Shown here piece by piece: positions 2,421 through 51,929 of a stretch of 52,424 bases of DNA. The stretch is from Octopus bimaculoides. Lineage: Eukaryota. The notes under the pieces are model-generated. The model ran no database searches. It saw only the letters and a program-made list of their open reading frames with translations, and was not told where the DNA came from. The stretch lies in NCBI RefSeq assembly GCF_001194135.2, contig NC_068987.1:1792301-1844724 (forward strand). The letters are read 5' to 3'. A program made the translations under genes and the position numbers. Within the stretch, counting starts at the first letter, position 1. The number at the start of each line of letters is the position of its first letter.

Positions 2421-2537
2421 ATCCGTGGAATTGTGAGGACGACCACGAAGAATGTCGAGAAATCATGCGACGTGGCCGTTGTACGAAGGAGGGGGGAAAA
2501 TACTACCTCCATTGTCAACGATCGTGTGGACTTTGCG
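2421..2537 (+). CDS. Coding exon (phase 1-1) encoding a complete ShKT (ShK toxin-like) six-cysteine domain: PWNCEDDHEECREIMRRGRCTKEGGKYYLHCQRSCGLC
   Basis: Acceptor cttttgatcgtcaacAG at 2419-2420, donor G|GTAAGG at 2538. Length 117 nt, open frame. Cys spacing C-x6-C-x8-C-x10-C-x3-C-x2-C with C-x-D start and C-x-R-S-C-x-x-C end is the ShKT signature. This frame is absent from the ORF track. Confidence 0.9.
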
Positions 2538-2849
2538 GTAAGGAAACCTCATCCAATAATTCTTCATTGTGACCCGTTTTTTTTTTATAGGTGGCGGAGT
2601 GGTGCTGGTGGGGAATGCTAGCAATGGTGGACGGACATACAGACTCAGCCGTGGTCACCATCATTCTTACAGACATTCATATACACATACATACGTACAC
2701 ACACACACACACACACATATACATACACATAAACATACACACGCACATGCATATATACATACATACATTCACACACATATACACACATACATACATACAT
2801 ACATACATATATACACACATATATATATGTATGTATGTATGTATATGTG

Positions 2850-2886
<37 letters not shown>

Positions 2887-4975
2887 GCATGTATGTATGT
2901 ATAAGAACGCTGGGTTTGTTTTAGTAAGATCATAGCAGACTGACTCGTCCACCAAATCCATCACTGAACATTGAGCATTTGTAAAACATTCCAGTGATTC
3001 TCCATTTGAGGTTCCTGCTTTGAACAGATACACAGAATCGCATACGTGCATGTAGCACACTTACACACGCACATATTTGTGTATGATATGTGTTTGGGAA
3101 ATATGCATGATACACACAAACACACACGGACACATTCCCGTTCCTTATAATACCTTCACGAATATTCACACACTTAATCACGCAAACGAAATTATGCGCA
3201 CATACCCCTAACCGATCAATAAACAGAGACGCATCTACACATACACATTCATAGACACACGTACAAATATATACAAATGCAAGCGCTTACAACACACGCA
3301 CGCACACACACACACAGAGGCACTGCATGCACACACGATGATTTGCAAGTAGAGAATCTACTATGAAAAAGCATTGATGGACTCGAGCCTTCGACTCGAC
3401 TTTTACCTCTGTCACTTCTGATAATGCAATTTGCTATCGATTAGCCGCTTCGATCTCTATTCCGACCTATAATAAGGCTATTGTTTATCAACAATCTGAC
3501 CTAGGGTCAATATTGATAATATTAGATCACGGGGTGAGGGTAATACAGATTCCTTCTGTAGTACAAACTTTTACGAAGACAAAACCAAATGGAACAAAGC
3601 ATCCAAGAATAAATTCGTCGAAGGAAACATACATACAAGCATACATACACACAAGCGTAAGACCAATTCTTCTAAAACAGACTCAAAGCAGACTTAGAAG
3701 AGAATGGGAAATCATTGAAAAGGTCACGAACAGCGATGAAAGAACTTGGACTAACAAACAACCGATTAGTTGTTTAATCAATACATTAAACAAATGCTTG
3801 ATTAGTAAGCTGGTTAGATATTTAACCGATTGAATAATAATAAAGAAGTAATACTGAACCAGTGCATGTATCATTTTTATTGTCGTAATGGCCCTCCCAA
3901 AACTCAGCAAGATTAAGATATTAAGTTAAGACCAAATACTGCTACGATAAAGTACATATATCTAATAATTAAAGACATGTTCCAGTAAATTTGAAACATA
4001 TTTGAACCTGTAAAGGCTTTTCACTTCAGTTTGTCGTGGAGAAAAATAATTCTTGCCTAAGGCAAAAACGCGGCCTCTATTGGACTCAAACAGATTCGAA
4101 CTGGTCTTAATTTAGTTTACGCATCACCGCTTTGTATACTTACTCAGTAGATTAATAATTTAAATTTTCAAAACGAAAAATTATCGAAGTATTAATGTAA
4201 TTATTATTTAATTTTAGAAATTAGCACTCGATATTATATTACTAAATGCACTAAAACGGTATAACAGATGGGAATGTCATGGACGGAATATCTATGATCA
4301 TCGCTTCTACAACTGGCCGAGGGTTAAACACCTCCAACATCAACAGCTACAAACAACTCCCTACAACAACAAAAAAACAACAACTGAAACATCAATAAAA
4401 ACACAAAACATTTTGTCAATATTTCATTTGAGATTTTTACAAAAAAAAAAATATTTTGTAAATATTAATGTTTTTTATCGATTTATTTGTTGAAAATATT
4501 TGTAATTGAATTCATCAACAATTGTTCATTAGTCATTTGAAATTTTTAAAAGTAATTACCAATAATGTTGTTGTTGTTGTTGTTGCTGTTGTGCTGACAA
4601 TGACAGTGTTGCTTTTTTTATTTTCTGTTATCGTTGTTTTTGTTAAAGTTTTTTTTTTTAAGTGCTGGAGACTGCACCGCTATTTGTGACTTTGAAAGCG
4701 CTTTCAAAGTGCTTCCATTATTTCACCATTAATCTCTGTTATCGTAATTCATGAGCTTTATATTGTAGTTGTCGCTATTGTAGTGGCTGTCTTTGTTATA
4801 TTTATCATCCATAGTTTAAGAAATACAACAAAAGTTTCTATTCTTGGACTAATAATTTGGTTCATCTTGAATAACCTCCAGAGCAGTGTTCACCGTTAAC
4901 AAGGATGTTCATCGCCAAAGTGAACATAGATATTCAATATGTGTATAAATGTGTACTCATAAAACTACTACATAC

Positions 4976-5046
4976 GAGTAGGAGTGGCTGTGTGGTAAGA
5001 AGCTCGCTTACCAACCACATGGTTCCGGGTTCAGTCCCACTGCGTA
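4976..5046 (+). mobile_element. tRNA-derived SINE family A, head only (truncated)
   Basis: GGAGTGGCTGTGTGGTAAG (A-box-like) ... GGTTCAGTCCCACTGCG (B-box-like); the same head recurs at 6113, 25717, 33200 and 38490. Confidence 0.8.
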
Positions 5047-5161
5047 TTCATGTTGTAGATGTTCTTGTTGTTGTTCTTATGGAATTTTACTCATATTATT
5101 TTAAGTGCAAATTTCGACTTCTACTTTTATATCTCCCCACCCTGCTCTTACACAAACTCAG

Positions 5162-5447
5162 CCCCTCTCAAAGAAACTAAATGTAAAACCTCCGAAGGTT
5201 GTACGTTCGAATCTGATGGTTTGCATTCAAATGGAATCTTTCCAGGTGTCCGCGAAGAGAGTAAACAACGGTGCGAATTTGCTGACAAATATGTCGGCAA
5301 ATGGATGTTGTATGAAGAAGAATACAATGAACAGGTCGTCATTAACAAAACACACATCAGTTTCTCCAAGCTAGGATCTTTCCGATGTGAAGAATTAAAC
5401 CCATATAAGGAGAAATATAAAGTATCATCAGTGTTTCCTAATGGATG
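5162..5447 (+). CDS. Coding exon (phase 1-2): PLKETKCKTSEGCTFESDGLHSNGIFPGVREESKQRCEFADKYVGKWMLYEEEYNEQVVINKTHISFSKLGSFRCEELNPYKEKYKVSSVFPNG; the alternative in-frame start is 5246
   Basis: Donor TG|GTAAGT at 5448. Acceptor either ...ctcttacacaaactcAG (5160-5161) or atctttccAG (5244-5245). Lies in ORF 5059..5451. The split codon TG+T gives Cys with the next exon. The 3' boundary is firm and the 5' boundary is ambiguous. Confidence 0.85.
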
Positions 5448-5567
5448 GTAAGTAGGGCTCCTGGCTTTCTTTATTCCGTTTTTCCTTCTTTCAGTTATAT
5501 ATTTTTAAATTACGGAGATGTACTTGCATAGCAAGTCACCTGATATGAGATCGTGTGCTGGAACGAA

Positions 5568-5857
5568 AACAATTGCAGCGTGGAAGGTGTTTATTAGCCA
5601 TTTAAGAAACACGCGAAAACAGTTAAATTCACTTCAACATTTAAATTTAATTTGTCAAAATACTTTCGTCACTTTGAGACTGCGACCTGTTCACTGACAA
5701 ATTTCTAAGATGCAGCACGGAATTTCGTCAATGAACAGGTCGCGGTTTCAAAGCGACGAAAATATTTTGACAAATTAAATTTAAATGTTGAAGTGAATCT
5801 AACTGTGTTTGTGTGTTTCTTAAATGGCTTATAAACACCTTCCACGCTGCAATTGTT
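5568..5857. repeat. Long fold-back inverted repeat (MITE/foldback-like), arms of about 134 bp and a loop of about 21 nt
   Basis: 5568-5701 is the reverse complement of 5723-5857 with 11 mismatches by manual alignment. Confidence 0.92.
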
Positions 5858-5921
5858 GCTAAAATTAGTTTTATTTAAAATTCTTTCACTTACAAAGTTT
5901 TCAACCAACATAAAAATTTCT

Positions 5922-5987
<66 letters not shown>

Positions 5988-6112
5988 CAACAGATGAGAT
6001 CCAGAGATGCTCAACGTAGGAAACAGTAGCGTTCAAATGATTTAAACTCAGCGATAATGATGCAACTGAACGAATAAAACCGATCGGGTTTCATTTATAA
6101 AATATACATACA

Positions 6113-6274: not shown

Positions 6275-6310
<36 letters not shown>

Positions 6311-6490: not shown

Positions 6491-6866
6491 CATGTAAATG
6501 AAGAGAAACCAAAAGACTCTATGTATTACTGATGATGAACATTCATGGATGTATATATAGATATCCGTATAGTAATGGAGCAGATTAGCACAGAGTACAA
6601 AATACGTTTTGTAAAATACATCTGCCAACATTATAGCGTAATTCTGAACTCCCAGAAACAGCTGTTGGAAATGATATATCGTACCTTCTTCCCTTAGCAC
6701 CGTGTATATAGGTGTACACATTCATATGTATATATGTATATATGTGTGTGTGTGTGTGTGTGTGTATACATACATATATGTGTGCGTGTATGTATGTGTA
6801 TTTTATATGCATGTTATTGTTAATGCTATCTCTATTATTTAACTAACAAGATTATGAAACAGCTGT

Positions 6867-6953
<87 letters not shown>

Positions 6954-7056
6954 TATGTACGTGTTTGTATGTACATATGTATGTACGTATGTATGTATGT
7001 ATGTATGTATGTATGTATGTGTGTATGTATGGATAGATAGATAGATAGATAGATAG
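6867..7056. repeat. (TA)n of about 80 bp, then (TATG)n and (GATA)n, immediately upstream of the 7105 exon
   Basis: Direct reading. Confidence 0.95.
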
Positions 7057-7104
7057 AACATCTGCTATCAATTTAATGCATCGTTTCTCTTTTTGTCATT
7101 TCAG

Positions 7105-7169
7105 TTCTCAACGCTATACTTGCATAGAATTCAATCGCAGAAACAATAACCTACTGCAGTATAGAATAG
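7105..7169 (+). CDS. Coding exon (phase 2-1): (C)SQRYTCIEFNRRNNNLLQYRI(G)
   Basis: Acceptor tttctctttttgtcatttcAG, donor G|GTGAGT at 7170. Length 65 nt, continues the frame of the previous exon without stops. Confidence 0.9.
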
Positions 7170-7419: not shown

Positions 7420-7630
7420 AAAATTTTGGTACAAGGCCAACAATTACGGTAGAAAGGGTAAGTCGATTATTACATCGATCCTACCGTCCTCAACTCATTC
7501 TTATTTGCTCGACCTCGAAAGAATGAAAGGCAAGTTCGACCTCGGCAGAATTTGAACTTGGAATTAGTTCCGAAATGCCACTAAGCAGTCTGCTCGGTGT
7601 GCCAGCCGTTCTGCCAACGCACCGCCTTAA
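7420..7630 (-). mobile_element. SINE family B
   Basis: Reverse complement of AAGGCGG..GGCAGAA..GGC..TTCTGAGTTCAAATTCCGCCGAGGTCGA..TCATCCTTTCGGGGTCGA consensus, degenerate. Confidence 0.8.
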
Positions 7631-8487
7631 GCTAAAGATAAATGTTTTCATTTAATAACGTTGTTGCCACCAAAACGATTTATAAACTTTGGAAAGATCG
7701 GGGAATAGTTTTTGAAGGTATGGGTTGGAGTGAATCTCGAAGCACATATAATCTATAAATAAAAAAAAAGTCGAGGAGAAAACGAACCCACATCGCCTAT
7801 AGACAGAGCAGACACTCTACCATTGGATCGAAGCAATCCTTCGAATTTCTATGATTTAGAAACTGTATTCTTACTCGCAAACGCCTGTTGTACCTACAGA
7901 AGATGTGAGTTCGATACCCACGGCTGGCCTTCATTTTTTCCCATCCAAATATTTACATTCTATTATTTCTAGATTTGTGCTTTGAGACTCAGTTCTACAA
8001 AAGAGTTCTTTAATAAATACAGAATTTATATGCGAGCTAATATAAACATCATAAGCAGGCAGTACTGCAATTGGACGGATCCTGTGTTTATCAAATGGTG
8101 CGCGCGCGCGCGTATGTGTGTGCGTGCGTGTGTGTGAAATGAAGCTGTGGCACAAGGGACGATATGAATTTACAAAAAGATGAGAAAAAATATCGGATGC
8201 AGACAAGCTATATCCCTCGTCATTTATTGACCAAATATCATCACGGTCTCGACAACTTCGGACAATTGTGTCCACTTGAACGGTATAAGCAACATAAGCT
8301 GATGAGGTGTAAACTTGTGGACATGAAAGACGAAGAGGGACAAGAATGGAGAAAAATAAGGAGAAATGATGAGGTCCGTCGACCCAATGGTAAATATGTA
8401 CATGTAGGTATTTGTATATATGCATACGTGAGTCTATATTTATAATAATTGATATGCATCGTTCATAGGCGAGTGCGCTTATGTATT

Positions 8488-8706
8488 ACTCTTTTCTACT
8501 CTGGGCACAAGGCCCGAAATCTTTGGGGGAGGGGGCCAGTCGATTAGATCGACTCCAGTACGCAACTGGTACTTAATTTATCGACCCCGAAAGGATGAAA
8601 GGCAAAGTCAACCTCGGCGGAATTTGAACCCAGAACGTAAAGACAGACGAACTACCGCTAACCATTTCGCCCGGCGTGCTAACGTTTCTGCCAAGCTCCT
8701 CGCCGT
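8488..8706 (-). mobile_element. SINE family B
   Basis: Close reverse-complement match to 9351-9520, roughly 90% by eye. Confidence 0.88.
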
Positions 8707-8847
8707 CTTATCTATATGTATTATTGAAAATGCAATGCATTTACAGCGTATTACTCTCAGTTTAAAGTTACATCAGACTTGTACAATATGAAAGGAATAT
8801 TAGCATCTTTAGATTCTGCTCAAGAAATACCATGGAAAATGTTTTTC

Positions 8848-8878
<31 letters not shown>

Positions 8879-9350
8879 ATTTATTTATTTACAGATAGTT
8901 TATGTCATCTAGAATTATTTCAATCAGCAAAAGGAGATCTGGTTTCAAAACACGTGAAAAGATAATATTAAAAAACGGATAATTATCTATTTGAAAATAA
9001 ACAATTCGAGCGTTTTGTATATCAGGTCATACGGAGAAAATGGAAAGTAAGAAAGCAGAAGATTTAGCAAAAGTTGTAGAAATAAATAGGAATAAATAGT
9101 TCTGGATTAGTTTTCAAATCTATTTCCAATAAAACCATCTAGCAAAAACAATTGTAGAAATTGAGTAGAAGAATGATTAGGTAAACTATCAAAATTTATC
9201 TTGTATCATCTGAACAATATCTTTTATTTGATACTGTATATAGATAGATAGACAGACAGACAGTTAGATGGATAGACAGATAGACAGACAGACAGACAGA
9301 CAGGTACATAGACAGACAGGTACATAGACAGACAGACAAATAGATAGATT

Positions 9351-9768
9351 ATGCGGCGAGCTGGCAGAAATGTTAGCACACCGGGCGAACTGCTTAGCAG
9401 TATTTCGTCTGCCACTGCGTTCTGAGTTCAAATTCCGCCGAGGTCGACTTTGCCTTTCATCCTTTCGGGGTCGATAAATTAAGTACCAGTTACGCACTGG
9501 GGTCGATATAATCGACTTAATCCGTTTGTCTGTTCTTGTTTGTCCCCTCTGTGTATAACCCCTTGTGGGCAGTAAAGAAATAGGTATTTCGTCTGCCACT
9601 ATGATCTGAGTTCAAATTCCGCCGAGGTCGATTTTGCCTTTCATCCTTTCGGGGGTCGATTAAATAAGTACCAGTTACGCACTGGGGTCGATATAATCGA
9701 CTTAATCCGTTTGTCTGTCCTTCTTTGTCCCCTCTGTGTGTAGCCCCTTGTGGGCAGTAAAGAAATAA
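9351..9768 (+). mobile_element. SINE family B with head-to-tail duplication of a unit of about 184 bp
   Basis: 9400-9583 is repeated at 9584-9768 (GTATTTCGTCTGCCACT...GTGGGCAGTAAAGAAATA); B-box-like GAGTTCAAATTCC in both units. Confidence 0.9.
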
Positions 9769-11893: not shown

Positions 11894-12713
11894 GATATAT
11901 ATATATATATATATTTGTGTGTGTGTGTATGTATATATAAATTGATATATATAAATAGATATATGTATNNNNNNNNNNNNNNNNNNNNNNNNNNNNNNNN
12001 NNNNNNNNNNNNNNNNNNNNNNNNNNNNNNNNNNNNNNNNNNNNNNNNNNNNNNNNNNNNNNNNNNNNNNNNNNNNNNNNNNNNNNNNNNNNNNNNNNNN
12101 NNNNNNNNNNNNNNNNNNNNNNNNNNNNNNNNNNNNNNNNNNNNNNNNNNNNNNNNNNNNNNNNNNNNNNNNNNNNNNNNNNNNNNNNNNNNNNNNNNNN
12201 NNNNNNNNNNNNNNNNNNNNNNNNNNNNNNNNNNNNNNNNNNNNNNNNNNNNNNNNNNNNNNNNNNNNNNNNNNNNNNNNNNNNNNNNNNNNNNNNNNNN
12301 NNNNNNNNNNNNNNNNNNNNNNNNNNNNNNNNNNNNNNNNNNNNNNNNNNNNNNNNNNNNNNNNNNNNNNNNNNNNNNNNNNNNNNNNNNNNNNNNNNNN
12401 NNNNNNNNNNNNNNNNNNNNNNNNNNNNNNNNNNNNNNNNNNNNNNNNNNNNNNNNNNNNNNNNNNNNNNNNNNNNNNNNNNNNNNNNNNNNNNNNNNNN
12501 NNNNNNNNNNNNNNNNNNNNNNNNNNNNNNNNNNNNNNNNNNNNNNNNNNNNNNNNNNNNNNNNNNNNNNNNNNNNNNNNNNNNNNNNNNNNNNNNNNNN
12601 NNNNNNNNNNNNNNNNNNNNNNNNNNNNNNNNNNNNNNNNNNNNNNNNNNNNNNNNNNNNNNNNNNNNNNNNNNNNNNNNNNNNNNNNNNNNNNNNNNNN
12701 NNNNNNNNNNNNN

Positions 12714-13535: not shown

Positions 13536-14902
13536 GAAACGTGTGTGTGTGTGTGTGTTTGAATGTTGTGTGTGTTTGCAACAATGAGTACAAGAGAAGA
13601 AAGATAAATATATATATATATATGGAAGAGTAAAAGTTGAGATGTTTACGAGATGTGGCGCCAATTTAGCGAAATATAGAGAAACAGTTTATTGATTTGT
13701 CCCAATAACTCCTTAATTTTCTTTTATGGACCCCCTGAATATGGACCCCCGCCTATGAAAGGCGAACTNNNNNNNNNNNNNNNNNNNNNNNNNNNNNNNN
13801 NNNNNNNNNNNNNNNNNNNNNNNNNNNNNNNNNNNNNNNNNNNNNNNNNNNNNNNNNNNNNNNNNNNNNNNNNNNNNNNNNNNNNNNNNNNNNNNNNNNN
13901 NNNNNNNNNNNNNNNNNNNNNNNNNNNNNNNNNNNNNNNNNNNNNNNNNNNNNNNNNNNNNNNNNNNNNNNNNNNNNNNNNNNNNNNNNNNNNNNNNNNN
14001 NNNNNNNNNNNNNNNNNNNNNNNNNNNNNNNNNNNNNNNNNNNNNNNNNNNNNNNNNNNNNNNNNNNNNNNNNNNNNNNNNNNNNNNNNNNNNNNNNNNN
14101 NNNNNNNNNNNNNNNNNNNNNNNNNNNNNNNNNNNNNNNNNNNNNNNNNNNNNNNNNNNNNNNNNNNNNNNNNNNNNNNNNNNNNNNNNNNNNNNNNTCC
14201 ATATATATGTGTATATATATATATATTCGAAATACGAGGCTAGAAAAAACAGCCAACAGCTGATGAAGGGTCGTTCTTTATCTTGTTTGTTTTGTTTTCG
14301 TTGTTCGAAAGAATAGTTCATATTCCATGTACAAGTACCTCGTACCTTTTTGGTGTACACGTTTCGTGACGTCCTGTGCCTACATATGCATATATATAAA
14401 CATATACATATACATAATCGTCAACCATCCGATGTGTATAGTATCTTAGTATACCCTCCTGTTATATGAAACTGTAAGTTCAAATCCAGCTACATTTAAT
14501 TTTGATTTCCTTCCTTGTGAATTCTATAAATAAAGTATCGGTTTAAACGACGTGATAGCGCGTCAAACAAATTGACCTGTGGTAACTGTCTTTGATCATT
14601 GCGCTCTGACGTCACCATCTGTAACACGAAGCCTTGTCATCAAAGATGAAAAATCAATGGAAGAAGCAGACGGAGTAGGAATAAATGGGGAATCAGAGAT
14701 GTCTTCGGGAAGCGATATGGTTCAAGATTTATATACGTGACATCAAGGCTTGGGGGTTATAAATGAGCCCTAAGCCGTTCACTGGTTAGTGTTGCAGGCT
14801 GAGTCAAAGTGAGACGATTAATGGCACCAACCATATTTTCAGTTTGTTAGTTTCCGCTGATTGCAAGAGATATTGACAATGTATTATTTCTCGTCGTTGC
14901 AG

Positions 14903-15010
14903 GTAAATTTAGACGAATGAACTTACCACTGGATCAGCTGTGTGTATTTAACGATGATACATACCCTTGGATGGAAAGTGGGTGGAGTTACCATATGAAA
15001 AATCTCATCC
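14903..15010 (+). CDS. Coding exon (phase 1-1): (G)KFRRMNLPLDQLCVFNDDTYPWMESGWSYHMKNLI(Q)
   Basis: Acceptor ttatttctcgtcgttgcAG, donor C|GTAAGT at 15011. Length 108 nt, open frame, phase-compatible on both sides. Confidence 0.88.
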
Positions 15011-17175: not shown

Positions 17176-17352
17176 AAATGGAGAATCTGTGGCCGTCGTA
17201 TTGTGGTCTGGAAAGCAGCATTCCCTTCAGTGGAACCTACGATGGACAGTACTGTGAAGGGACGATAGGAGATTGGAACGAGAATACGTGTCTTACCGAA
17301 AGCTCTCTTATTTTGAGGTCAGATACCTGTTCAGCTCTTTTGATCCCTCAAG
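17176..17352 (+). CDS. Coding exon (phase 1-1): (Q)MENLWPSYCGLESSIPFSGTYDGQYCEGTIGDWNENTCLTESSLILRSDTCSALLIPQ(E)
   Basis: Acceptor tttctttttgtttttgtttggcAG, donor G|GTAAGA at 17353. Length 177 nt, lies in ORF 17169..17363, Cys/Trp-rich. Confidence 0.9.
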
Positions 17353-17543
17353 GTAAGATGTGATTCCTCGTTTTTGAAATTTCTTCCTATTGTTAAATTC
17401 ACTCACAAAGCATCGGATGTCACGAGACTATAGTAGAAGACATTGCTGGGGAGTGAGACAGATTCCGATACCTCGTAGTTGCCAAGCTGCGAAGAAAAAT
17501 GATTAGTAATAGTCATGCCTGCTCAATATATAAATACCCCCGT

Positions 17544-17852
17544 TCTGAGTTCAAATTCCGCCGAGGTCGACTTTGCCTTTCATTATTTCGCGATCGATAA
17601 ATTAAGTACCAGTTGTGTACTGGGGTCGACCTAATCGACTGCCCCCCTCCCTCCCCCAAAATTTCGGGCCTTGTGCCTAGAATAGAAAAAAATATATAAA
17701 TACCCCGAAGGTGGCGATCAGGCAGAATTGGTGCCGCACCGGAAAAAATGCTGAGCGGCGTTTATCCCAACTTAACGTTCTAAGTTCAAATGCCACCGGG
17801 GTTGAGCTAAGCTTTAATCCACTTTGCTGGCCTTGTGTCAAAATTTTAAAAC
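17544..17852 (+). mobile_element. Two SINE family B copies (5'-truncated 17544-17690; internally deleted 17709-17852)
   Basis: GTTCTGAGTTCAAATTCCGCCGAGGTCGACTTTGCC...ACTGGGGTCGACCTAATCGACT; the second copy starts AAGGTGGCGATCAGGCAGAA. Confidence 0.8.
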
Positions 17853-18076: not shown

Positions 18077-18174
18077 AATTTGAGTGCCTTGCCTTCTTAA
18101 ACGAGCAAAATGGATTGATTGATAATCTGGTTATAACTCGTAGCAAAGATGGAAAAAATGAATTTAACTGTTGG
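18077..18174 (+). CDS. Coding exon (phase 1-0): (E)FECLAFLNEQNGLIDNLVITRSKDGKNEFNCW
   Basis: Acceptor ttctttattctctgtttcAG, donor TGG|GTAAGT at 18175. Length 98 nt, open frame. Confidence 0.9.
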
Positions 18175-18421: not shown

Positions 18422-19099
18422 NNNNNNNNNNNNNNNNNNNNNNNNNNNNNNNNNNNNNNNNNNNNNNNNNNNNNNNNNNNNNNNNNNNNNNNNNNNNNNN
18501 NNNNNNNNNNNNNNNNNNNNNNNNNNNNNNNNNNNNNNNNNNNNNNNNNNNNNNNNNNNNNNNNNNNNNNNNNNNNNNNNNNNNNNNNNNNNNNNNNNNN
18601 NNNNNNNNNNNNNNNNNNNNNNNNNNNNNNNNNNNNNNNNNNNNNNNNNNNNNNNNNNNNNNNNNNNNNNNNNNNNNNNNNNNNNNNNNNNNNNNNNNNN
18701 NNNNNNNNNNNNNNNNNNNNNNNNNNNNNNNNNNNNNNNNNNNNNNNNNNNNNNNNNNNNNNNNNNNNNNNNNNNNNNNNNNNNNNNNNNNNNNNNNNNN
18801 NNNNNNNNNNNNNNNNNNNNNNNNNNNNNNNNNNNNNNNNNNNNNNNNNNNNNNNNNNNNNNNNNNNNNNNNNNNNNNNNNNNNNNNNNNNNNNNNNNNN
18901 NNNNNNNNNNNNNNNNNNNNNNNNNNNNNNNNNNNNNNNNNNNNNNNNNNNNNNNNNNNNNNNNNNNNNNNNNNNNNNNNNNNNNNNNNNNNNNNNNNNN
19001 NNNNNNNNNNNNNNNNNNNNNNNNNNNNNNNNNNNNNNNNNNNNNNNNNNNNNNNNNNNNNNNNNNNNNNNNNNNNNNNNATATATATATAAAGTGTGT

Positions 19100-19145: not shown

Positions 19146-21455
19146 GCTGTAACTTGTCAGCAACATGACCTGGTGGAGTGCAGTCTAAATTCGCTAATAG
19201 TGTTATGTGTCTCTTTTGCCGAGAGCAGACATTGAAAATGAGTCGACTGGATCAGAGCTGATCCAGGCTTAAACAACAAGGAAGAATGACACATTAGTTA
19301 ATGTAACACTAGATACACAATGCGTGTAGAAAAGACGGTATTTTTTCGTTTGAAAATTTCTGATCATAGGTCTACTGGATAATGTCTGTCCTGGGGCTAA
19401 ACTACAACAGCAACAACAACAACATCAGGGGCATTAGTAGCAACATCAAAGTCAATGAAAATAGCATTACAGGAACAATAATGAGATACAGCAACGTTGC
19501 GATCGGATCCCACTTACATTACCATAAGGAATGCTAGGAGGAGGAGAAGAAGGAGGCGGAAGAGAAAGAAGTAGGAGGAGGAGGAGGAGGAGGAGGAGGG
19601 GAGGAAATAAGAGATCAGGTGACAGTAGGTTAACAAGAAATATGTCGATGATATTAAGTCATTCAATTAAAGAAGCGGACGAAAATCGCGGATGTTTAAA
19701 ATGTTTGAGTAATCATATTATGGGTTGTTTGGTTGCAATAAAGATTCTGCGACTAACAAGACAACAGCTTGAATTCTAGAGTTTACAGACGACGAAGAAG
19801 AAGAAGGAGAAGAAGAAGAAGAAGANNNNNNNNNNACGTGTGTGAGTGTGTGTGTAATCCTGTGTATCATACTTTACGTAGATGTGTTCTAGACAACCTG
19901 TAAACTGCGGTATTCGTTTCGAGATAGCATCTCTTCTAAACGTATAGTGTTAAAAAACACGGAAATATATCAGTGGCAGTCAAAAAGAATTTCTAAATCC
20001 GTTTATCTGCTTCTTTGAAAGACCCAGTAGTAAGTAAACACCGAATGTTTTTCAGCTGCTTAATGCTGTTGAAACCGGACATAGCGAATGGTCCCACGGA
20101 ATTATTGTGGTAGAGGAAAAAGGAATTCTTGCAGAAAATTTCATATATTTCGATAACATATAAATAAGTGATTTTTAAGAGAAAGACGATTACTTTTGAC
20201 CAGAAACATATTGGGCGAAGGGAAAGAAATGTCCCTAACTCTTGAGAAATTGTCATGCAGAAGACAGAAGGAAGTTTCTATTTAAGATTCCTGACATCAT
20301 AATGAATCCCATGCTTGTCATTTACTTCTTGGCACATTATTCTCAGCTTTAATGTCTGCTGCTGTTGTTGCTGCTGGTGCATTCTCCCAATAAACACAAA
20401 ATCCTCCATTGTCCTACTTTTACCAGCGAACAATTATCCGCCACCCCTGTAAACCCAACAGATAAACTCGCATTCAACAGCGTGAAGTTAATGTAGTTTA
20501 TGTGCAGATTTCGGTACACACAATGCAAGCAGCTTCAACAGTATNNNNNNNNNNNNNNNNNNNNNNNNNNNNNNNNNNNNNNNNNNNNNNNNNNNNNNNN
20601 NNNNNNNNNNNNNNNNNNNNNNNNNNNNNNNNNNNNNNNNNNNNNNNNNNNNNNNNNNNNNNNNNNNNNNNNNNNNNNNNNNNNNNNNNNNNNNNNNNNN
20701 NNNNNNNNNNNNNNNNNNNNNNNNNNNNNNNNNNNNNNNNNNNNNNNNNNNNNNNNNNNNNNNNNNNNNNNNNNNNNNNNNNNNNNNNNNNNNNNNNNNN
20801 NNNNNNNNNNNNNNNNNNNNNNNNNNNNNNNNNNNNNNNNNNNNNNNNNNNNNNNNNNNNNNNNNNNNNNNNNNNNNNNNNNNNNNNNNNNNNNNNNNNN
20901 NNNNNNNNNNNNNNNNNNNNNNNNNNNNNNNNNNNNNNNNNNNNNNNNNNNNNNNNNNNNNNNNNNNNNNNNNNNNNNNNNNNNNNNNNNNNNNNNNNNN
21001 NNNNNNNNNNNNNNNNNNNNNNNNNNNNNNNNNNNNNNNNNNNNNNNNNNNNNNNNNNNNNNNNNNNNNNNNNNNNNNNNNNNATATATATATCTATTTG
21101 TGTGTGTATCTATATGTATATGTATGTATATATCTATGTTCAAAACACGAACTCGCGCATATGCAATCACATATACGCGTACGTACACATATATATATAT
21201 ATCTTAAATCAAACTTTCATATATAAGAAAAATGTTCATATACACACATATAATCGTACATATACATATTAAATATATATGACCATAAATATTTGTACAT
21301 ATTCAAACACACGCATATAGAAATTTATTTATATATGAGTACGTGTGTGTGTTTGTGTGTGTGTATCATATTTATATAATATATTTCAATATACACCTAT
21401 ACATATAATACACGCTTATAATATATATATATATATATATATATACATGATATAC

Positions 21456-27030: not shown

Positions 27031-28243
27031 NNNNNNNNNNNNNNNNNNNNNNNNNNNNNNNNNNNNNNNNNNNNNNNNNNNNNNNNNNNNNNNNNNNNNN
27101 NNNNNNNNNNNNNNNNNNNNNNNNNNNNNNNNNNNNNNNNNNNNNNNNNNNNNNNNNNNNNNNNNNNNNNNNNNNNNNNNNNNNNNNNNNNNNNNNNNNN
27201 NNNNNNNNNNNNNNNNNNNNNNNNNNNNNNNNNNNNNNNNNNNNNNNNNNNNNNNNNNNNNNNNNNNNNNNNNNNNNNNNNNNNNNNNNNNNNNNNNNNN
27301 NNNNNNNNNNNNNNNNNNNNNNNNNNNNNNNNNNNNNNNNNNNNNNNNNNNNNNNNNNNNNNNNNNNNNNNNNNNNNNNNNNNNNNNNNNNNNNNNNNNN
27401 NNNNNNNNNNNNNNNNNNNNNNNNNNNNNNNNNNNNNNNNNNNNNNNNNNNNNNNNNNNNNNNNNNNNNNNNNNNNNNNNNNNNNNNNNNNNNNNNNNNN
27501 NNNNNNNNNNNNNNNNNNNNNNNNNNNNNNNNNNNNNNNNNNNNNNNNNNNNNNNNNNNNNNNNNNNNNNNNNNNNNNNNNNNNNNNNNNNNNNNTATAT
27601 ATATATATATATGCATGTGTGTATGTGTATATATATATATATGTATATATATATACACATATGTACATCCATACATACTCATATGCACGTATGTAAATGT
27701 ATGCGCATGTCTGTGTGTATATGTTTGTGTCTATATACACTTCAAACGCACATGACTTTGAGACAGTTGCATCTATGTTTATATAGACACATTCTTGGGT
27801 GTATAATTTTGTATATATAATAATGAAACTATTTATTTTTACTGACACAAGATTTAAAAAAATAATATTTATCTATTCTGCTATAAAAATACACATTTTT
27901 TTCTGTATAGAGGTAATAGCGTTTACTTGACTTCCCATTATACATACATTACATACACACACATATATATATACACACACACACACACGTGTTCCTTTTA
28001 TGTACACATAAGCCTGGTATAACCACTGGGTGTATAAAATTCTGAAGTTGATGGGAAAATATTTTCCCTGCTTTTAACTGATTGCTCTCTGTCAAGTGGT
28101 CACAAATGATGGCGCAGTGCCCTGCACGGTTTTGTATCTCGTGTGACTGGTAGCGGTGATGATGTTATAATGAAATTCAACACGAACATCTTGGTTTTGA
28201 AGATTGTAAACTTAATTTCAACTTCTATCGTTTATCTTTTAGT

Positions 28244-31424: not shown

Positions 31425-31630
31425 AGGTATTTATTTATTTCCCACAGGGGGCTAAACATAGAGGGGACAAACAGGGACAAAGTGCATAACTGGTATTTAT
31501 TTAATCGACCCCCGAAAGAATGAAAGGCAAAGTCAACTTTGGTGGAATTTGAACTCAGAACGTGACGGCAGACGAAATGCCGATAAGCATTTCGCCCGGC
31601 GTGCTAACCATTCTGCCATCCCGCCGCCCA
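31425..31630 (-). mobile_element. SINE family B
   Basis: Reverse complement of the family B consensus, including the CCCACAGGGGGCTAAAC tail. Confidence 0.85.
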
Positions 31631-32222
31631 TTTTTGTGGGGGGGGGGGGGGGTGCGTGTGTGTGTGTGTAGATTCTGGTGCTACTCCTGATATAAAGTAC
31701 GGATCAGTCCTTCCCATAATCCTGTTGCAACAACGGGAAAAGCTTCCATAAAGTTTTATTTCCAATTTTAAAATGGAATTTCATATAAATACGTTGTTAT
31801 TCCAAATCCCAAGTTATTCAACTTGCAACAACTTAGCGACCGCATTAAACACATGTTGACTCTGTTCAATGTGAATCCATGATTAACTGGCGTAGCGCAA
31901 TATGCTTGTTTGTCAAAGCGTCTATGGGCAGCTATTAACCGAAGGTTAGAAATGTCATCTCAATGCTTCCACCAGAAGCTCTTCATCTGGGACAGCTTCC
32001 AAAATGAATCGCCTCTTTCCATAGCCATGGATATCCAAGGTTTACTGAGACAAAATCCACTGCCACTTATGAGTATCACGGCATGGTTACTCCTAGCTGA
32101 ACATAGGCCAGGATTCTTTGGAAAAGAAAGAAAGGGAAATTAACTCAAAATCGCATTGTTCAAAGTGTCCTGCAGTTGTTGTCCTCGCTGTCCGTTTTGG
32201 TGTAAATATTGTTCCTGTTGTT

Positions 32223-32910
32223 TACATTCTGAGTTCAAATTCCGCCGAAGTCGACTTTGTCTTTCATCCTTTCGGGGTCGATAGATTAAGTAGCAGTTGC
32301 GTACTGGGGTCGATCTAATCGACTGGGCCTCCCCACCTCCCTAAAAATTTCGGGCCTTTTGCCAAGAGTGGAAAAGGATATTGTTCTTGTTGTTATTGCT
32401 TTTGTTATTCTCGTTGTGATGCTATTGTTGTTTTTATATTTGTTGTTATTTATTGTTACTGTGGTTGTATAAAGAAATCAAACTGGCAGAATCGTTAGTG
32501 CGCCGGATAAAATATTTTGCGGCATTTAGTCCGTCTTCACGTTCTGGGTTGAAACTCTGCCGAGGTCGATTTTGGATTTCAACCTCATGGGATCGATAAA
32601 ATGAGTACCAGTTGCACACTGGGGTCGATTCAATCGACTAGCGCCCCCCCCCCCAAAAAAAAAAATTTCACGCCTTGTACCTTTAGTAGAGAGGATTATT
32701 AACTTTTGCTGTGAAGGCGGCGTTTTGGCAGAATCGTTACGAAACCGGACAAAATGCCGAACGACATTTCTGAGTTCAAATTGCCCCTAGGTTGACTATG
32801 TCTGTCATCCTTTCAGGGTGGATAAAATAAGTACCAGTTGCGTACTGGGGTCGATATAATCGACTCCCCCTCACTTCAAGAATGCTGGTCTCGTGCCAAA
32901 ATTGGAAAGA
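32223..32910 (+). mobile_element. Cluster of three same-strand SINE family B copies (32223-32380, 32483-32698, 32714-32910)
   Basis: Each has TTCTGRGTT(C/G)AAA..., CATCCTTTC/CAACCTC, AGTACCAGTTGC..ACTGGGGTCGAT..ATCGACT. Confidence 0.85.
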
Positions 32911-35865: not shown

Positions 35866-36053
35866 NNNNNNNNNNNNNNNNNNNNNNNNNNNNNNNNNNN
35901 NNNNNNNNNNNNNNNNNNNNNNNNNNNNNNNNNNNNNNNNNNNNNNNNNNNNNNNNNNNNNNNNNNNNNNNNNNNNNNNNNNNNNNNNNNNNNNNNNNNN
36001 NNNNNNNNNNNNNNNNNNNNNNNNNNNNNNNNNNNNNNNNNNNNNNNNNNNNN

Positions 36054-37436: not shown

Positions 37437-37549
37437 TATTATTATTGCTATTAATATGATCATCATCATCATCATCATCATCATCATAATCATCATAATC
37501 ATTATTGCTGTTGTTATTGTTATTGTTATGTAAAAAGAAATCATCATCA

Positions 37550-37592
<43 letters not shown>

Positions 37593-37673
37593 CATTATTA
37601 TTATTATTACCATCATTATCATCAGCGTTATTATTATTATTACCATCATCATTGTTATTGTTATTACTTCCAC

Positions 37674-37718
<45 letters not shown>

Positions 37719-37735
37719 TATTATTATTTATTTTT
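37437..37735. repeat. Compound (ATC)n/(ATT)n trinucleotide microsatellite
   Basis: Direct reading; it explains the poly-M/I/L/S ORFs. Confidence 0.95.
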
Positions 37736-38214
37736 ACTGTTTATTTATATTTCCCTTCCCGGTCTGCAATTAACACCAACTCTTTGTCTCTTAAAACTAT
37801 CTTTATCGCCAATCTTCTCCTCATTGTCTACTGAATGTCAACCCTTAGCGCCAACACCCCACCATTCGGCACCCCACTCCAAACACACACACACACATGC
37901 TCACCACACTGAATCATGGCCCCACCCTGCACCCCTCATCAGTAATATATGTCTATGGCCGGCCAATAAACATTTCAGCCATCGCTTCCACTCGGCTCCA
38001 CACCTATTGCCAAGGGGAAGGCGCCCTTATTAAAACTACTTCCTAACGTCGACAGCGCCGTCGTTATCGTCATCATCATCATCATCGTAATCAGCATTAT
38101 CATCAATATCACCATCATCATACCACCACCGCCACCACCATCACTATCATCATCGTCGTCGTCGTCGACACCATCATCATCACCAATGCCGTCGCAGCCG
38201 CCATCATCAACGCT

Positions 38215-38245
<31 letters not shown>

Positions 38246-38489
38246 TCCATTACCACCATCACCGTCGTCATCATCATCAACGACAACAACAACAAGCAAC
38301 AGCACCCACATGGGTCACACCGCATCCTATATCATCGCTACACCAATAGCTATGTACCCACAATGCAATAGAAACACCCGCATCAAACGTATCTCGAAAA
38401 TCAACTTCGAAAACCACAGAAACAAAAAAAAATTAAAATATCCGAGCACAAAAAAAAAAATTATTCTCCCCGAATCAACTTGATTAGGA

Positions 38490-42092: not shown

Positions 42093-42639
42093 CAGTCTGT
42101 GTGTGTCTAACAAAGAAAGAAAAATATATGAAAAGGATAAAAATGAAGGTAGTTGAGATTTGTATTTTAGAGAAGTAATAATATGCAGGAAATTACGAAG
42201 AAAACTAAAGGAATATAAAAAAAAATTGTATGAATAGAGATTGTTGCATTCAAGTAATTCTGACTAATTTATGAGAAGTTCTCAAAGAGGTTACAGACGA
42301 CTTATGTTGAACGTAAAACCAGAAGCACAAATATAAACAAACCAGGAAACGAACGGACTTTGTTTGTGTGTGTGTCTGTCTGTGCTCGCGTGTGTGTATG
42401 AATGTATGTATATAGTTGCGTATACAGGCAATTTAGTAAGCTCCAGATTCGAAGAAGCGAAGCGATAACACATTAGTCGATGATACCTTACTCAATAAGG
42501 GCAGAGGTACCATCCTGATGGAGAGGTACGATAGGATATGAATCTGTTAGAAACAGCAACAACAAAACGCTGATGTTGATGATGATGATGAGAAGAAGCA
42601 GAAGAAGATGAAGAAGAAGAAGAAGAAGAAGAAGAAGCA

Positions 42640-42757
42640 CAATGCCTCAAATTTCGGGGACGGAATTAAGTCGATTACGTCGACCCCAGTGCATAACTAG
42701 TACTTATTTAATCGATCCCGAAAGGATGAAAGGCGAAGTCGACCTCGGCGGAATTTG
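42640..42757 (-). mobile_element. SINE family B, partial
   Basis: CGACCCCAGTGCATAACTAGTACTTATTTAATCGATCCCGAAAGGATGAAAGGCGAAGTCGACCTCGGCGGAATTTG. Confidence 0.85.
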
Positions 42758-44063: not shown

Positions 44064-44532
44064 ATTCCAAATTTTGCCACAAGGGCAGAAATTCTGGGGT
44101 GAGGGGATGAGTCAATTACATCGACCCCAGTACGCAACTGGTTCTTATTTTATCGACCTCGAAAGGATGAAAGGTACAGTCGACCTCGGCGGAATTTGAA
44201 CTCAGAACATAGAGACGGGCGAAATGCCGCTAAGCATTTCGTCCAGCGGGCTAACCATTCTGCCAGCTCGCCGCCTTAATAATAATAATAATGATAAAGA
44301 AATAATACGAATAATAATCCTTTCTACTAAAGGCACAAGACCTGAAATTTAGGGGAGAGGGCCAGTCGATAAGATCGACCCTTGTACGCAACTGATACTA
44401 AATTTATCAACCACGAATAGATGAAAGCCAAAGTCGACGTCAGCGGAATTTGAACTCAGAACGTAAGGACGGACGAAATGTCGCTAAGCATTTTGTCCGG
44501 CGTGCTAACGACTCTGCCAGCTCGCTGCCTTA
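44064..44532 (-). mobile_element. Two tandem SINE family B copies (44064-44279, 44318-44532) embedded in (AAT)n
   Basis: Both end on + with CTGCCAGCTCGC(C/T)GCCTTAA, the reverse complement of the element start. Confidence 0.88.
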
Positions 44533-47371: not shown

Positions 47372-47405
<34 letters not shown>

Positions 47406-50400
47406 NNNNNNNNNNNNNNNNNNNNNNNNNNNNNNNNNNNNNNNNNNNNNNNNNNNNNNNNNNNNNNNNNNNNNNNNNNNNNNNNNNNNNNNNNNNNNNN
47501 NNNNNNNNNNNNNNNNNNNNNNNNNNNNNNACACTCACATATATACATATGTATATACATGACAATATATATTATTGAAAAAATTTCAGTCTAAATTGTT
47601 ACATGGGCAACACCGGGTATCTCGGTTGATATGTGCACACACACACACACACACACACATACACACATTAATGTTTGTGTTTATCAGTGTTTTTTGTGTT
47701 TGACAAGGCATGTGTATGTGTCTGTAAGCCTGAATGTACATTTTGTGTAAATATATATGTTCATGGTGTATACACACACATGTAATTATATGTGATGTGT
47801 ATGCATATATCACGATATGTATGTATGTATGTATGTATGTATGCAGATACATTGCTTTGTTATCATGGTGAGAGAGGAGGTGCGAAATAAAGGGTTGAGG
47901 ATTGGGGGTGGAAGAACGACAGAGAAGAACAGCGAGATAGGTAGATAGAGAGATAAAGAGAGAGAGAAAGAGAGAGAGAGAAGGGGTAAGAAAGAGTGTG
48001 AGTAGAGATAAGAAGTGCAATGAATGCGGTAAAGTAAGAATGTGGAATTGGTAAGTCTGAATATTTTGGGTATCTTACCAATATTTTATCAGCATTTCCG
48101 TTGTACCTAGGTCTACTCCAGACGTTCACACTTTGCATTTTCTTTCAACGCTTAACCTTTACACATTTTACATTTCGCATTTCTATACCTTTTCAGCCCC
48201 TTTTAATGACATAGAGGAAAGAGAAGAGTAATGCTCATGACCCCTTATTAGGGAGTCCGGGACCGATAGCAAGAATAGATGAAGCGATTCAAAGACAAGA
48301 GATTTAACACAAATATTTACAATTGTCTAAACTCTAGAAAACACTCTGAAATAGCAGGTGGAGCTGTTAATCCAGAGATCGATTAAATCTATCACAATGT
48401 TTCCGTCTGCCAAATTAATTATGAAGAAGCTAGCTTCTTCACCGCACAGCTAAGCCTTATCTAGTCTCACCCTCTTATAACTTCACTCTTTTCTGTCTTT
48501 TTTCTTTCTCCTTTTACATATGTCACTTCCACACTCCTTCACGCTCTCTGTCTATTCTTTTCCATTTGTCCCTGTATGAATACATCATATATATTACGTG
48601 ATTGATAGATAATTTATTTGAAATCGTGTCCTAGCTTGTTGTGAGACTAGCTCCATTACCTACGAATCTCCTAACCGGAAGTTTTCATTCCTTCCTTCTC
48701 TTTCTCCTTCCTGTATCTCTTCTCTCCTCACTTTCCTTCGTCCCCTCCTCTGCCACATTTTCTCTCTTCTATCTCTCTCTCTCTCCTTTTATACCCCTCT
48801 CTCCTTCTAACCCCACTCCATTCCTCTCTCATTCACTATTTCCACTTCCGTTTTTGTCTTGGTATGTAAACCCAAAGTTGGAATTGATCAAACAAACCTA
48901 TAATCAAAGACGTTCCAGTTGGCCGTCCCACCTACGTAAGTTAAATCTAGAATTTTATGAGCCGATGTGACCTTTTCGTCTATAAAACGGTAGGGTACAA
49001 TTTGAGGGAGATTTGACTACTTCTTGTAGCAGATCGGCCAACCAGGTAGAGTTACCCACTTCAGATCCCCTGGCATTATCATAGGAGCGCTGTCATATTT
49101 ACTATAAATCATTCTTTACCGTTTTCTAATTAACCACGACCACCTAGTCGAACGTTGCTCCACCCCCATCTCACACTCTCCCAGAGATTCAGGTGTTGTT
49201 GTTCGTTAATCGTCTGTAAAGAATGGTTAATGAACAAAACATAGCATCGTTCTACAGAATTCTTCCGTTCCTCATTAGTGTCATAGTTAAAGTGATGCCA
49301 CATCATATCTGCTCATCAATTTGTTACATCTTTGTTGTTCTTGTTATTGTTGTTGCTGCTGTTTTTAATATTGTAGTAGTAGTAGTAGTAGTAGTAGTTG
49401 CTCTTGCCGTTGTTTTCGCTGCAGTAGTAGTTGCTATGGTTGTTGCAGGTGTTGATGTTGTTATTCTTGATTTTAATATTTTTGTTACTCTTGTTGTCGT
49501 ACTTCTTCTCACCAACTTACTGGAAATAGACTTTTGTCTGCTTCCATTATTTATTTATTTATTTAGTCCCCGAGTTATACGTCATTTTATTTTGTGGTGT
49601 TTGTGTGTAGGGGGTGGGGTGGGATTCTTGATTCTAGTTTTTGTTTCATGAGGGTCCTTCTTTCATTTTCGCCCAGTTAATTACGGTAACATTAACAACA
49701 ACAGTAATTAGGCGCTACTAGATTCTAGCATAAAAAGCGTAGATATAAATAACATAAATAAATGGATGGAAGGATGTGGAACAATGATGTAGTGGTGTTC
49801 ATGGTTTTCCTGAAGTGAAAAGAATGAAATTATTTCAACCGCAGCAACAAGGACGGCGTTATAATTGGTCAGATTAGCTGGGAGGAAAACTCAAACAAGG
49901 ATACACACGCGCGCGCGCGCAAGTGAACGAGATATAAAAGACAGAAGTCCCTGGCTCTTTGCCCAGGTTATTTGTCAAGGACAGGACAAATGGAAAAAGA
50001 GAACAGTGAAAACAGAGAAGGAAAGAAGAAAAGAAAACTGGAAAATTAATCTGAGTTTCAAGATGTCTCTGATACGAAGATTTGAAGAAGCCTGTGCGAG
50101 ATCGATGTGTGGTAGGGAAAGTTAGTTACGTCGGTTGGGGCCAGAATGTCGACACAATAAGCCTCTTGCATTAGGGAACAAAGAAACATCATGAAACCAA
50201 AATATAGAATGGAAGCAGAGCATTCGTCAGATGAAAACCGCCCAAGTCTACAGAATGCTCTAATCAGCCGAAATCAGAGATGGGTGGTTAGAATTAATCG
50301 ACCAGATACTGTTGTTTAAAACCTCTCGAAAAGAAGCTCCTCCAAATGGAAGGATCACCAAACAAGTAACAGCAGAACATAGCCCCACCTGGTGGTGATG

Positions 50401-51787
50401 ATTAGAAGGCAGCTTTCTTTTTTTCTAATATCTCAAACCGTTCTCGTAAAGAAGATCGGCTGCTCTTTAACAGCAGCAGCAGCAGTCTTGCTTTGTATCT
50501 CTGTTGGTCGAGTCTCAGGAACTAATTGCTGTTTGCAGATGTTCCACAATTCTTTCTCAAGGCAGTAAAGAAGCTGTGAGCTGATTTCCCCGATCTCACA
50601 TGCAACACTTAGCCAGGAGTTTGTGTTCTTCGTCCATGTCTTAATTGTGACACATGGGAGCGAACCTATGGTTCGGCGTGTATTGAATGAGCGTCGGTTG
50701 TCTCTGATTTTTCTTTGTTCCCATTCACATTATATTTTGTGAAACTGATATCTCTCTCTCTCTCTCTCTGGTACTGCATCAGGACAATTATTATTATTAT
50801 TATTATTATTATTATAACTATATTTGGTAGATTGAGGCAAATTTCTATTGCATCACTTGCTATACCTCCATGTTGCTGGGGAGTGTGCAGCATTGTGTGT
50901 CTTTTATGCTTTTGGAGAGTGTGCAAACGCTTCCCGGTTTAGTATTCTGTTTTTAATTATTGATAGAAAAAATGTTATATACTGATCTTTACACAGTTGA
51001 ATTTTTTCTTTTGTTTTTCTTTTTAATTTTCCTTTTCTTTTTATAGGTTTTGCTGTGATTTACAGTTTCCGTAATTGTGCAGTTTGTATATTGGCAGGAG
51101 TTTATCACCTTAATTGTTATCGTCCGTTTTATTTGTTGCGTCAATAAAAGGTGTTTACATACTCGAGTAGTCAGGGAGAAGATGGTTGTAGATATTAAAG
51201 TTTCTAAATTTTCTAAAGACGATCGTTTGTATGTCTGATCAGAGAAAACTGTAGTGTTCTTGTGATAAAAAGGGGGTCTACATTTTCGAATATTCAGGGA
51301 GAAAGGAACGCCTTATTATTGTTGATGATGATGCTGTTGTTATTTACTTTTCATCTGCATGTTTGTTACAATCACTTGCCGAGACATACCCAACTTGCTT
51401 TGGGCGAGTGAAGGATAAGAAATGTTACAGTATGACTGGAAGCTTGAGGTGGGGAGTGGCAGTAGCAAAATATGTTCATGTAAAGCAACACAGACAATTA
51501 ATTTGATAGGGTTTTTCTAAGGATGTAGTCAGTACTTGTCTGAACAATCTTTTGGATTTTTTGACACATGATTGTCCTGGGGTCTTATCTACATGTTTCT
51601 AACATTGTTTTCCTTTCTTTTTTTATCACACTCAGGGCACCAACAATAACATTTCTCGCTTTAAGATGCCACATCTTCTGTATTTCAATTTCCAGGTCCT
51701 TATATTTACTTAATTTGTCAAATTTCTTTAAAATTATTATTATTATTATTACTATTAAAGTTTTTCTACAATTTCTCTCTTAACCAG

Positions 51788-51929
51788 GTAATTACATCTT
51801 CTAGGAGAATCAACTCAACTTGGTTAAACAATGATATCTATCGAATGAAAAGCGTACAGTGTTCTTCGATGCCAGATATTGAAGTTTTGTCATCGAGAAA
51901 GCCAAAAGCTTCTCTCTATTTACAAGACA
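51788..51929 (+). CDS. Probable next coding exon (phase 0-1): VITSSRRINSTWLNNDIYRMKSVQCSSMPDIEVLSSRKPKASLYLQD
   Basis: Acceptor tttttctacaatttctctcttaaccAG, donor A|GTGAGT at 51930. Length 142 nt, open frame, phase 0 matches the 18174 donor. It is the best phase-0 candidate I found downstream of 18174 but implies a 33.6-kb intron. Confidence 0.65.

Follow-up and report, generated by a model that had tools for sequence, protein, structure and literature searches.

A ShKT domain on its own cassette exon lies between two homologous cysteine-rich units of a predicted surface protein of Octopus

The analysis of a 52,424-nucleotide (nt) stretch of Octopus bimaculoides DNA (contig NC_068987.1, positions 1,792,301 to 1,844,724; hereafter the window) revealed seven internal coding exons, E1 to E7, of one very large octopus gene, annotated as LOC106872790 in O. 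bimaculoides and LOC115213946 in O. sinensis. The first of these exons encodes a complete ShKT domain and is a true cassette, alternatively skipped in octopod transcripts, while the full-length protein places this domain between two homologous cysteine-rich units. The pairing of ShKT with DUF7043 is a known sequence feature, catalogued in databases and unstudied; what is new here is the conserved and still-active cassette nature of the ShKT exon together with the two-unit architecture. The explanation judged best overall, and considered likely, is that of an ancient cassette ShKT within a binding protein of this architecture that would be anchored by glycosylphosphatidylinositol (GPI).

Exon model, gene identity and domain architecture

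The window product was defined as the coding sequence fragment joined from seven forward-strand exons (Table 1). The exon phases form an unbroken chain from E1 to E7, the joined sequence of 909 nt comprises 302 complete codons, and the coding sequence runs on past the window after E7. An earlier note, made from the letters alone, had proposed that seven exons join in frame to about 330 residues; the in-frame splice model was borne out by an exact match to three Octopus proteins, and the length was corrected to 302 codons. The product matched residues 369-670 of XP_036360362.1 (O. sinensis) without interruption and at 100% identity, as it did residues 243-544 of XP_014775386.1 (O. bimaculoides) and residues 289-590 of CAI9725180.1 (O. 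vulgaris); the three proteins are listed on contigs of 110-129 Mb. The peptide strings quoted in the earlier note were all located on the forward strand, and its reading of the ShKT exon as symmetric, phase 1-1, was confirmed by the AG/GT borders and the phases.

Further support was obtained for the individual exons. E1 was supported by RNA runs and E2 by many of them, and both were present in the same RNA runs of the window's own organism; E2 was in addition 100% identical to the proteins P0002, an old 406-residue gene model, and P0003. E3 is part of the exact RefSeq protein match. E4 is a conserved block common to a related octopod genomic locus (L001, 5866-5986, on an ungapped contig), and the DUF7043 score was 48 bits without it and 55 bits with it. 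The DNA of E5 was 83% identical to L001, in which E6 was also conserved, and E7 was 100% identical to residues 642-688 of P0031 by tblastn. The first protein homologue search gave only P0001, a prokaryote-style open reading frame (ORF) call of E5 from a related contig, while a search with E2 against 1.84 billion representative proteins retrieved the gene's own annotated products and their relatives.

The window contains nine N gaps, none of which touches an exon; two are inside the E3-E4 intron and all the others inside the 33.6-kb E6-E7 intron. The gaps conceal no coding exon, according to two independent tests, the exact 302-residue protein match and the collinearity with a 2964-nt intron-free contig of another octopod (L002, public run). 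This contig holds a single uninterrupted ORF of 775 codons and thus represents a spliced mRNA. The blocks of L002 matching E1/E2 and E5/E6/E7 abut directly, and the blocks of E2 and E5 are separated by 173 nt, the sum of E3 (65) and E4 (108).

Of the 776 residues of isoform X1, the window encodes 387-688 according to tblastn, with 386 N-terminal and 88 C-terminal residues outside. In the chromosome record of O. sinensis the gene ranges over about 792 kb for a coding sequence of 776 codons; the 52-kb window is a small slice of this extremely intron-rich locus. The annotated products are named 'uncharacterized protein LOC115213946' isoforms X1-X4 in O. sinensis and LOC106872790 in O. bimaculoides, while the O. 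vulgaris proteins CAI9725179-82 carry the UniProt automatic names 'ShKT domain-containing protein' or 'DUF7043 domain-containing protein'. All of them are products of the same gene as that of the window, which differs from them in nothing except being partial. RefSeq models exist in many species, so that the domain architecture, described in the earlier note as unannotated-looking, was found to be annotated.

In the full-length models, the order of elements is a signal peptide, a first unit (DUF7043 and a DUF7042-like domain), ShKT, a second unit (DUF7043 and DUF7042), a Ser/Thr-rich stalk and a hydrophobic C-terminal tail. The ShKT domain, of 39 residues, occupies exactly the hinge between the two homologous units. 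The earlier note had it fused ahead of the cysteine-rich modules; DUF7043 does follow it directly, and the domain is an internal hinge rather than an N-terminal addition. The N-terminal and C-terminal halves of the protein matched each other by BLASTP (E = 3e-5, 24% identity over 268 alignment columns), and both units are rich in cysteine, with an all-β structure predicted. Inspection and Kyte-Doolittle windows showed that 12 of 13 models have a signal peptide together with a hydrophobic stretch ending 0-7 residues from the C-terminus. The stretch has about 15-20 residues, with small residues before it and a Ser/Thr/Pro-rich segment upstream, a layout that by inspection and hydropathy corresponds to that of a GPI signal, encoded outside the window. 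The extension of the model beyond the window, proposed in the earlier note, thus recovered both a signal peptide and a GPI-like C-terminal signal, in agreement with the guess of a secreted or cell-surface protein.

The ShKT assignment was confirmed by Pfam, in which ShK (PF01549) scored 24.5 bits with the spliced fragment and 22.6 bits with the full protein, against a cut-off of 20.9. The cysteine spacing is C-x6-C-x8-C-x11-C-x3-C-x2-C, and a regular-expression scan of the six frames of the window found a single six-cysteine ShKT pattern, that of E1. The profile of the family, searched against the PDB with E up to 10, matched solely the ShK-type peptides AcK1, Acan1, BmK1 and BgK, with AcK1 as the best match (E = 0.0025), while the same database searched with the spliced fragment returned only chance matches to antibody and portal proteins. 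The octopus domain aligned with BmK1, from a Brugia astacin, on all six cysteines, and the six-cysteine spacing is also shared with AcK1, BgK and the ShKT modules of astacins and CAP proteins.

DUF7043 (PF23070) scored 55 bits in the window product and 65 bits in the full protein (cut-off 27) and was found in all 20 orthologues; an overlapping, sub-threshold match of DUF7044 was also present on the window product. A second DUF7043 was recognized in the N-terminal half at 27.3-34.8 bits in three of the four halves tested, the scallop half (22.9) being below the cut-off, and the N-terminal half matched DUF7042 weakly. For DUF7042 (PF23069, cut-off 27), the scores were 20.1 bits in octopus X1, which is below the cut-off, 27.6 in P0002 and 40.4 in the chiton orthologue, and 12 of 20 orthologues matched at E <= 0.05. 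Judged from these profiles, the second cysteine-rich module (CGLESS...FNCWV...) appears to amount to DUF7042 at the family level, in a divergent octopus copy. The identity of the modules, given in the earlier note as DUF7042/DUF7043, was recovered in this form.

Table 1. Coding exons, assembly gaps and repeats of the window, in window coordinates.
Feature	Position	Strand	Content	Length, phase and borders
E1	2421..2537	+	whole ShKT domain (DPWNCEDDHEECREIMRRGRCTKEGGKYYLHCQRSCGLCG)	117-nt cassette exon, phase 1-1, AG/GT
E2	5246..5447	+	C-terminal DUF7043, first part (VREESKQRCEFADKYVGKW...FPNG)	phase 1-2, AG/GT
E3	7105..7169	+	DUF7043 continued (CSQRYTCIEFNRRNNNLLQYRI)	65 nt, phase 2-1, AG/GT
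E4	14903..15010	+	DUF7043 end and linker (GKFRRMNLPLDQLCVFNDDTYPWMESGWSYHMKNLI)	108 nt, phase 1-1, AG/GT
E5	17176..17352	+	DUF7042 start (MENLWPSYCGLESSIPFSGTY...)	phase 1-1, AG/GT
E6	18077..18174	+	DUF7042 continued (EFECLAFLNEQNG...NEFNCW)	phase 1-0, AG/GT
E7	51788..51929	+	DUF7042 end (VITSSRRINSTWLNNDIYRMKSVQCSS...LYLQD)	phase 0-1, AG/GT
Gaps, E3-E4 intron	11969-12713; 13769-14197		N
Gaps, E6-E7 intron (among others)	18422-19080; 27031-27595; 35866-36053; 47406-47530		N
Possible alternative terminal exon	19370-19536	+	Asn-rich low-complexity peptide (VYWIMSVLGLNYNSNNNN...HKEC)	AG acceptor, phase 0, TAG stop
Interspersed repeat, reference copy	8401-8800		SINE-like look
Interspersed repeat, other copies	7469-7557; 9344-9517; 9583-9702; 17541-17702; 31488-31618; 32221-32376; 32484-32701; 32768-32908; 42637-42757; 44078-44275; 44312-44523	both orientations
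Microsatellites (many others present)	1030-1416; 2560-2932; 6847-7041; 37455-38480		(CA)n, (TA)n, (CAT)n, (CAC)n

Cassette splicing and age of the ShKT domain

Annotated isoforms revealed that the ShKT exon is skipped as a unit. The O. sinensis isoform X4 (737 residues) and the O. vulgaris proteins CAI9725182.1 and CAI9725179.1 are devoid of exactly the 39 ShKT residues, with the junction '...AQQS/GVREESKQ...', and the same residues are absent from the old model P0002. Without recourse to genome annotation, both forms were also found in the other octopod, in transcript-length contigs of single public runs, where the ORFs of P0043 and P0060 (775 residues) include ShKT, while those of P0062 and P0063 (754 residues) are without it and have an 18-residue micro-exon instead.

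The conservation of the domain was examined in 20 orthologues from cephalopods, a chiton, gastropods, bivalves and a nemertean. Members of the family named by cluster look-ups comprised Argonauta hians models and orthologues in the chiton Liolophura (LOC135473592); the gastropods Haliotis, Gigantopelta, Batillaria, Babylonia, Nucella, Pomacea, Physella, Biomphalaria, Bulinus, Lymnaea, Candidula and Plakobranchus; the bivalves Crassostrea (C. virginica LOC111122881), Mizuhopecten (OWF46629.1), Pecten, Argopecten, Mytilus and Solemya; and the nemertean Tubulanus (LOC141905324). A third search, with a profile of 20 sequences, gave no taxa beyond those already found. The alignment showed the six ShKT cysteines to be invariant and at the same position in all 20 sequences, between '...YYEL.M....' and the first DUF7043 cysteine; an Asp after Cys1 is also conserved, as is a His before Cys4 in at least 90% of the sequences. 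The mollusc and nemertean orthologues, at 29-51% identity, share the domain order including the hydrophobic tail, and the family is apparently single-copy and deeply conserved in molluscs and nemerteans.

The chiton ShKT is likewise encoded by a single exon (L003, 10901-11017) of 117 nt with AG/GT borders and phase 1-1, which starts with the same ATCCGTGG. The shared position in the 20 orthologues and the identical chiton exon therefore place the capture of the domain before the common ancestor of molluscs and nemerteans. On this comparative evidence, the gain of ShKT is ancient and not a recent octopus invention, and the term 'lineage-specific' used in the earlier note did not hold.

The comparison of the window exons with L002 further revealed strong purifying selection. 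The proportion of differences at synonymous sites (pS) was 0.87, which is saturation, while that at nonsynonymous sites (pN) was 0.06; because of this saturation, the ratio pN/pS was used rather than a Jukes-Cantor-corrected synonymous divergence. The ratio was 0.064 for the ShKT exon and 0.072 for the other exons, and the cassette is thus constrained as strongly as the constitutive exons.

Predicted fold, proposed function and alternative explanations

AlphaFold2 models were obtained from an 18-sequence alignment, and two models were compared with the PDB using Foldseek. The model of the octopus protein had a mean predicted local distance difference test score (pLDDT) of 66.9, and that of a 443-residue gastropod fragment had one of 70.6. 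Within the DUF7043 and DUF7042 regions, each folded into seven or eight antiparallel strands, pLDDT values of 80-90 were reached, while the ShKT segment (residues 371-410) was of low confidence (48-56). The Foldseek matches of highest probability were a Bacteroides lipocalin-like protein (4gzv, probability 0.94) and Treponema Tp0751 (probability 0.98, target template modelling (TM) score 0.59); bradavidin followed at 0.28-0.38, and the tandem-barrel surface lipoproteins fHbp and TbpB were also among the matches. The lipocalin- and avidin-type matches had target TM scores of 0.31-0.59 and E >= 0.05 with models of moderate confidence. These models weakly suggest that the β-domains may be small lipocalin/avidin-type barrels.

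In the explanation considered likely, the protein would be a GPI-anchored cell-surface glycoprotein, in which four small meander β-barrel or β-sandwich domains may hold an extracellular ligand, whether a small hydrophobic molecule or a partner protein. From its place in the hinge, the ShKT knot would provide an optional protein-interaction surface or set the spacing and geometry between the units, and splicing would switch its contribution on or off. The protein would belong to the ancient housekeeping or developmental surface proteins of spiralians, rather than being a venom component or the product of a recent domain capture.

Several points weigh against this explanation. Neither model gave a Foldseek match at E <= 1e-3 (mean pLDDT 67-71), and in view of these E-values and the moderate models, the barrel and ligand-binding reading is therefore a resemblance at the fold level only. 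The GPI signal was judged by inspection and not by a predictor, and the C-terminal stretch may be a short transmembrane anchor instead. The use of the cassette in O. bimaculoides rests on RefSeq and GenBank isoforms of its congeners and on the transcripts of the other octopod. A literature search found no experiment or paper addressing the family, and no publication was found that mentions DUF7042-7045 or these loci and accessions. Finally, the ShKT domains of octopus and chiton have a Lys-Tyr pair at the fifth and fourth residues ahead of Cys4, with Lys-Phe in scallop, a register that is presumably that of the channel-blocking dyad of BgK. Given this resemblance a channel-directed role may be conceivable; the Lys-aromatic pair is absent from most gastropods, the oyster and the nemertean, and channel blocking would be possible for some members and not the conserved function of the family.

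Among the alternatives, an APCDD1-like, membrane-anchored tandem-barrel lipid binder, which might sequester lipidated ligands such as WNT, is considered improbable. The two proteins would share a common logic, as APCDD1 has a signal peptide, two homologous lipocalin-like barrels, a membrane anchor and a bound lipid (PMC10193966), and the octopus protein combines a signal peptide, two homologous cysteine-rich β units and a C-terminal anchor. Lipocalin-type barrels gave the Foldseek matches of best probability, and mouse APCDD1 (8e0w) was itself among the weak matches of the first model (rank 15, E = 0.085, probability 0.07). The second model, however, did not recover APCDD1, the family profile had no sequence match to 8e0w, no Pfam scan that was run matched APCDDC (PF14921), and true APCDD1 orthologues exist separately in invertebrates (PMC10193966). 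APCDD1, TbpB and fHbp are all membrane-anchored proteins with repeated small β-barrels and a weak Foldseek likeness to the octopus protein; with no significant sequence or structure score, this likeness is one of analogy and not of membership, and APCDD1 would serve as an analogue only.

A similarly low probability was assigned to an endogenous, membrane-tethered ShK-like modulator carried on tandem β-barrels. By analogy with the GPI-anchored Lynx/Ly6 'prototoxins', the ShKT knot with its Lys-Tyr pair could dock in cis or in trans on a receptor, a K+ channel or some other, in a manner switched by splicing, while the barrels could sense a lipid or protein ligand.

A venom or salivary precursor with ShKT as the active, K+-channel-blocking warhead is very unlikely. 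The Lys-Tyr pair of octopus and chiton, in its presumed BgK register, and the channel blockers AcK1 and BmK1 as the best solved relatives are in line with such a toxin, but the dyad is not conserved in gastropods, oyster and nemertean, the protein is large and has a membrane-anchor signal, splicing makes the domain optional, and the orthologue group is conserved in non-venomous bivalves and chitons.

Still less probable is a cephalopod-specific secreted or surface protein that captured ShKT recently by exon shuffling, a reading that follows the inference in the earlier note of a lineage-specific protein with an acquired toxin-like module. The symmetric phase 1-1 exon is the classic signature of shuffling, and no literature was found describing the pairing of ShKT with DUF7043. 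Nevertheless, the domain is in the same place in all the orthologues, from four molluscan classes and a nemertean, and the exon of the chiton agrees with that of octopus in both length and phase; any shuffling therefore predates the split of molluscs and nemerteans, and on these alignments a recent capture is refuted for cephalopods. The architecture proved to be both widespread and already annotated, an outcome that the earlier note itself had set against its interpretation, which was overall partly supported, while the observation itself was confirmed.

An origin of the ShKT exon in another gene or an annotation artefact, the true protein being without ShKT, is hardly credible, for while ShKT-minus models (P0002, X4) and assembly gaps around the locus speak for it, the 775-codon ORF of the 2964-nt contig includes ShKT in frame, flanked by the upstream unit and by DUF7043, E1 and E2 occur in the same RNA runs, and E1 is under strong purifying selection.

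Other features of the window and relation to known proteins

The window DNA is AT-rich and filled with dense (CA)n, (TA)n, (CAT)n and (CAC)n microsatellites, which yield long spurious His/Thr/Tyr/Cys-rich ORFs on both strands and are noncoding. An interspersed intronic repeat with the look of a short interspersed nuclear element (SINE) is present in at least 12 copies in both orientations, of about 90-220 bp and 75-87% identical. ARAGORN found no tRNA-like structure in the window. The translation of the repeat (…ITSTPV.N.YL.Y.PRKDE…) was incorporated at the N-terminus of P0002, the old gene model, which is also the only model using the possible alternative terminal exon listed in Table 1. This exon, situated just after a gap, is probably an ab initio artefact of the gapped assembly and not a real isoform.

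The cephalopod proteins differ from the other orthologues in the first unit, outside the window. The first DUF7042-like domain contains an extra insert of about 70 residues (approximately 243-315 of P0031/XP_036360360.1), in which a polybasic RYSRRRRKKRS motif (RRRRKKR at its core) has the look of a furin site, and an alternatively spliced micro-exon of 18 residues (DILKVNDLQESGLPASDE) follows this insert. Both are absent from other molluscs and from the nemertean.

The position of the ShKT domain also distinguishes the octopus protein from other ShKT proteins. Those of gastropods are reported in one study to be either short secretory peptides or proteins in which ShKT accompanies a CAP or an astacin (M12) domain; the study also notes that functional characterisation extends to very few M12-ShK proteins of molluscs (PMC6409789). 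Whereas astacin and CAP proteins carry ShKT as a C-terminal tail, that of octopus sits between DUF domains as an internal hinge subject to alternative splicing.

As a discovery the present result has little weight, as RefSeq and UniProt already list the gene, its isoforms and both domain labels for many spiralians; its value as a lead is modest, since it points to a deeply conserved, unstudied family of surface proteins. The phase 1-1 exon tells how the module was once acquired and not when. Most discussion of ShKT treats it as a toxin or as something appended to astacin and CAP proteins. In the present family the domain forms an internal hinge, has remained on a symmetric exon of its own over hundreds of millions of years and is still toggled by splicing, and the family thus offers a clean natural system for asking what a ShKT domain does when it is not a toxin.

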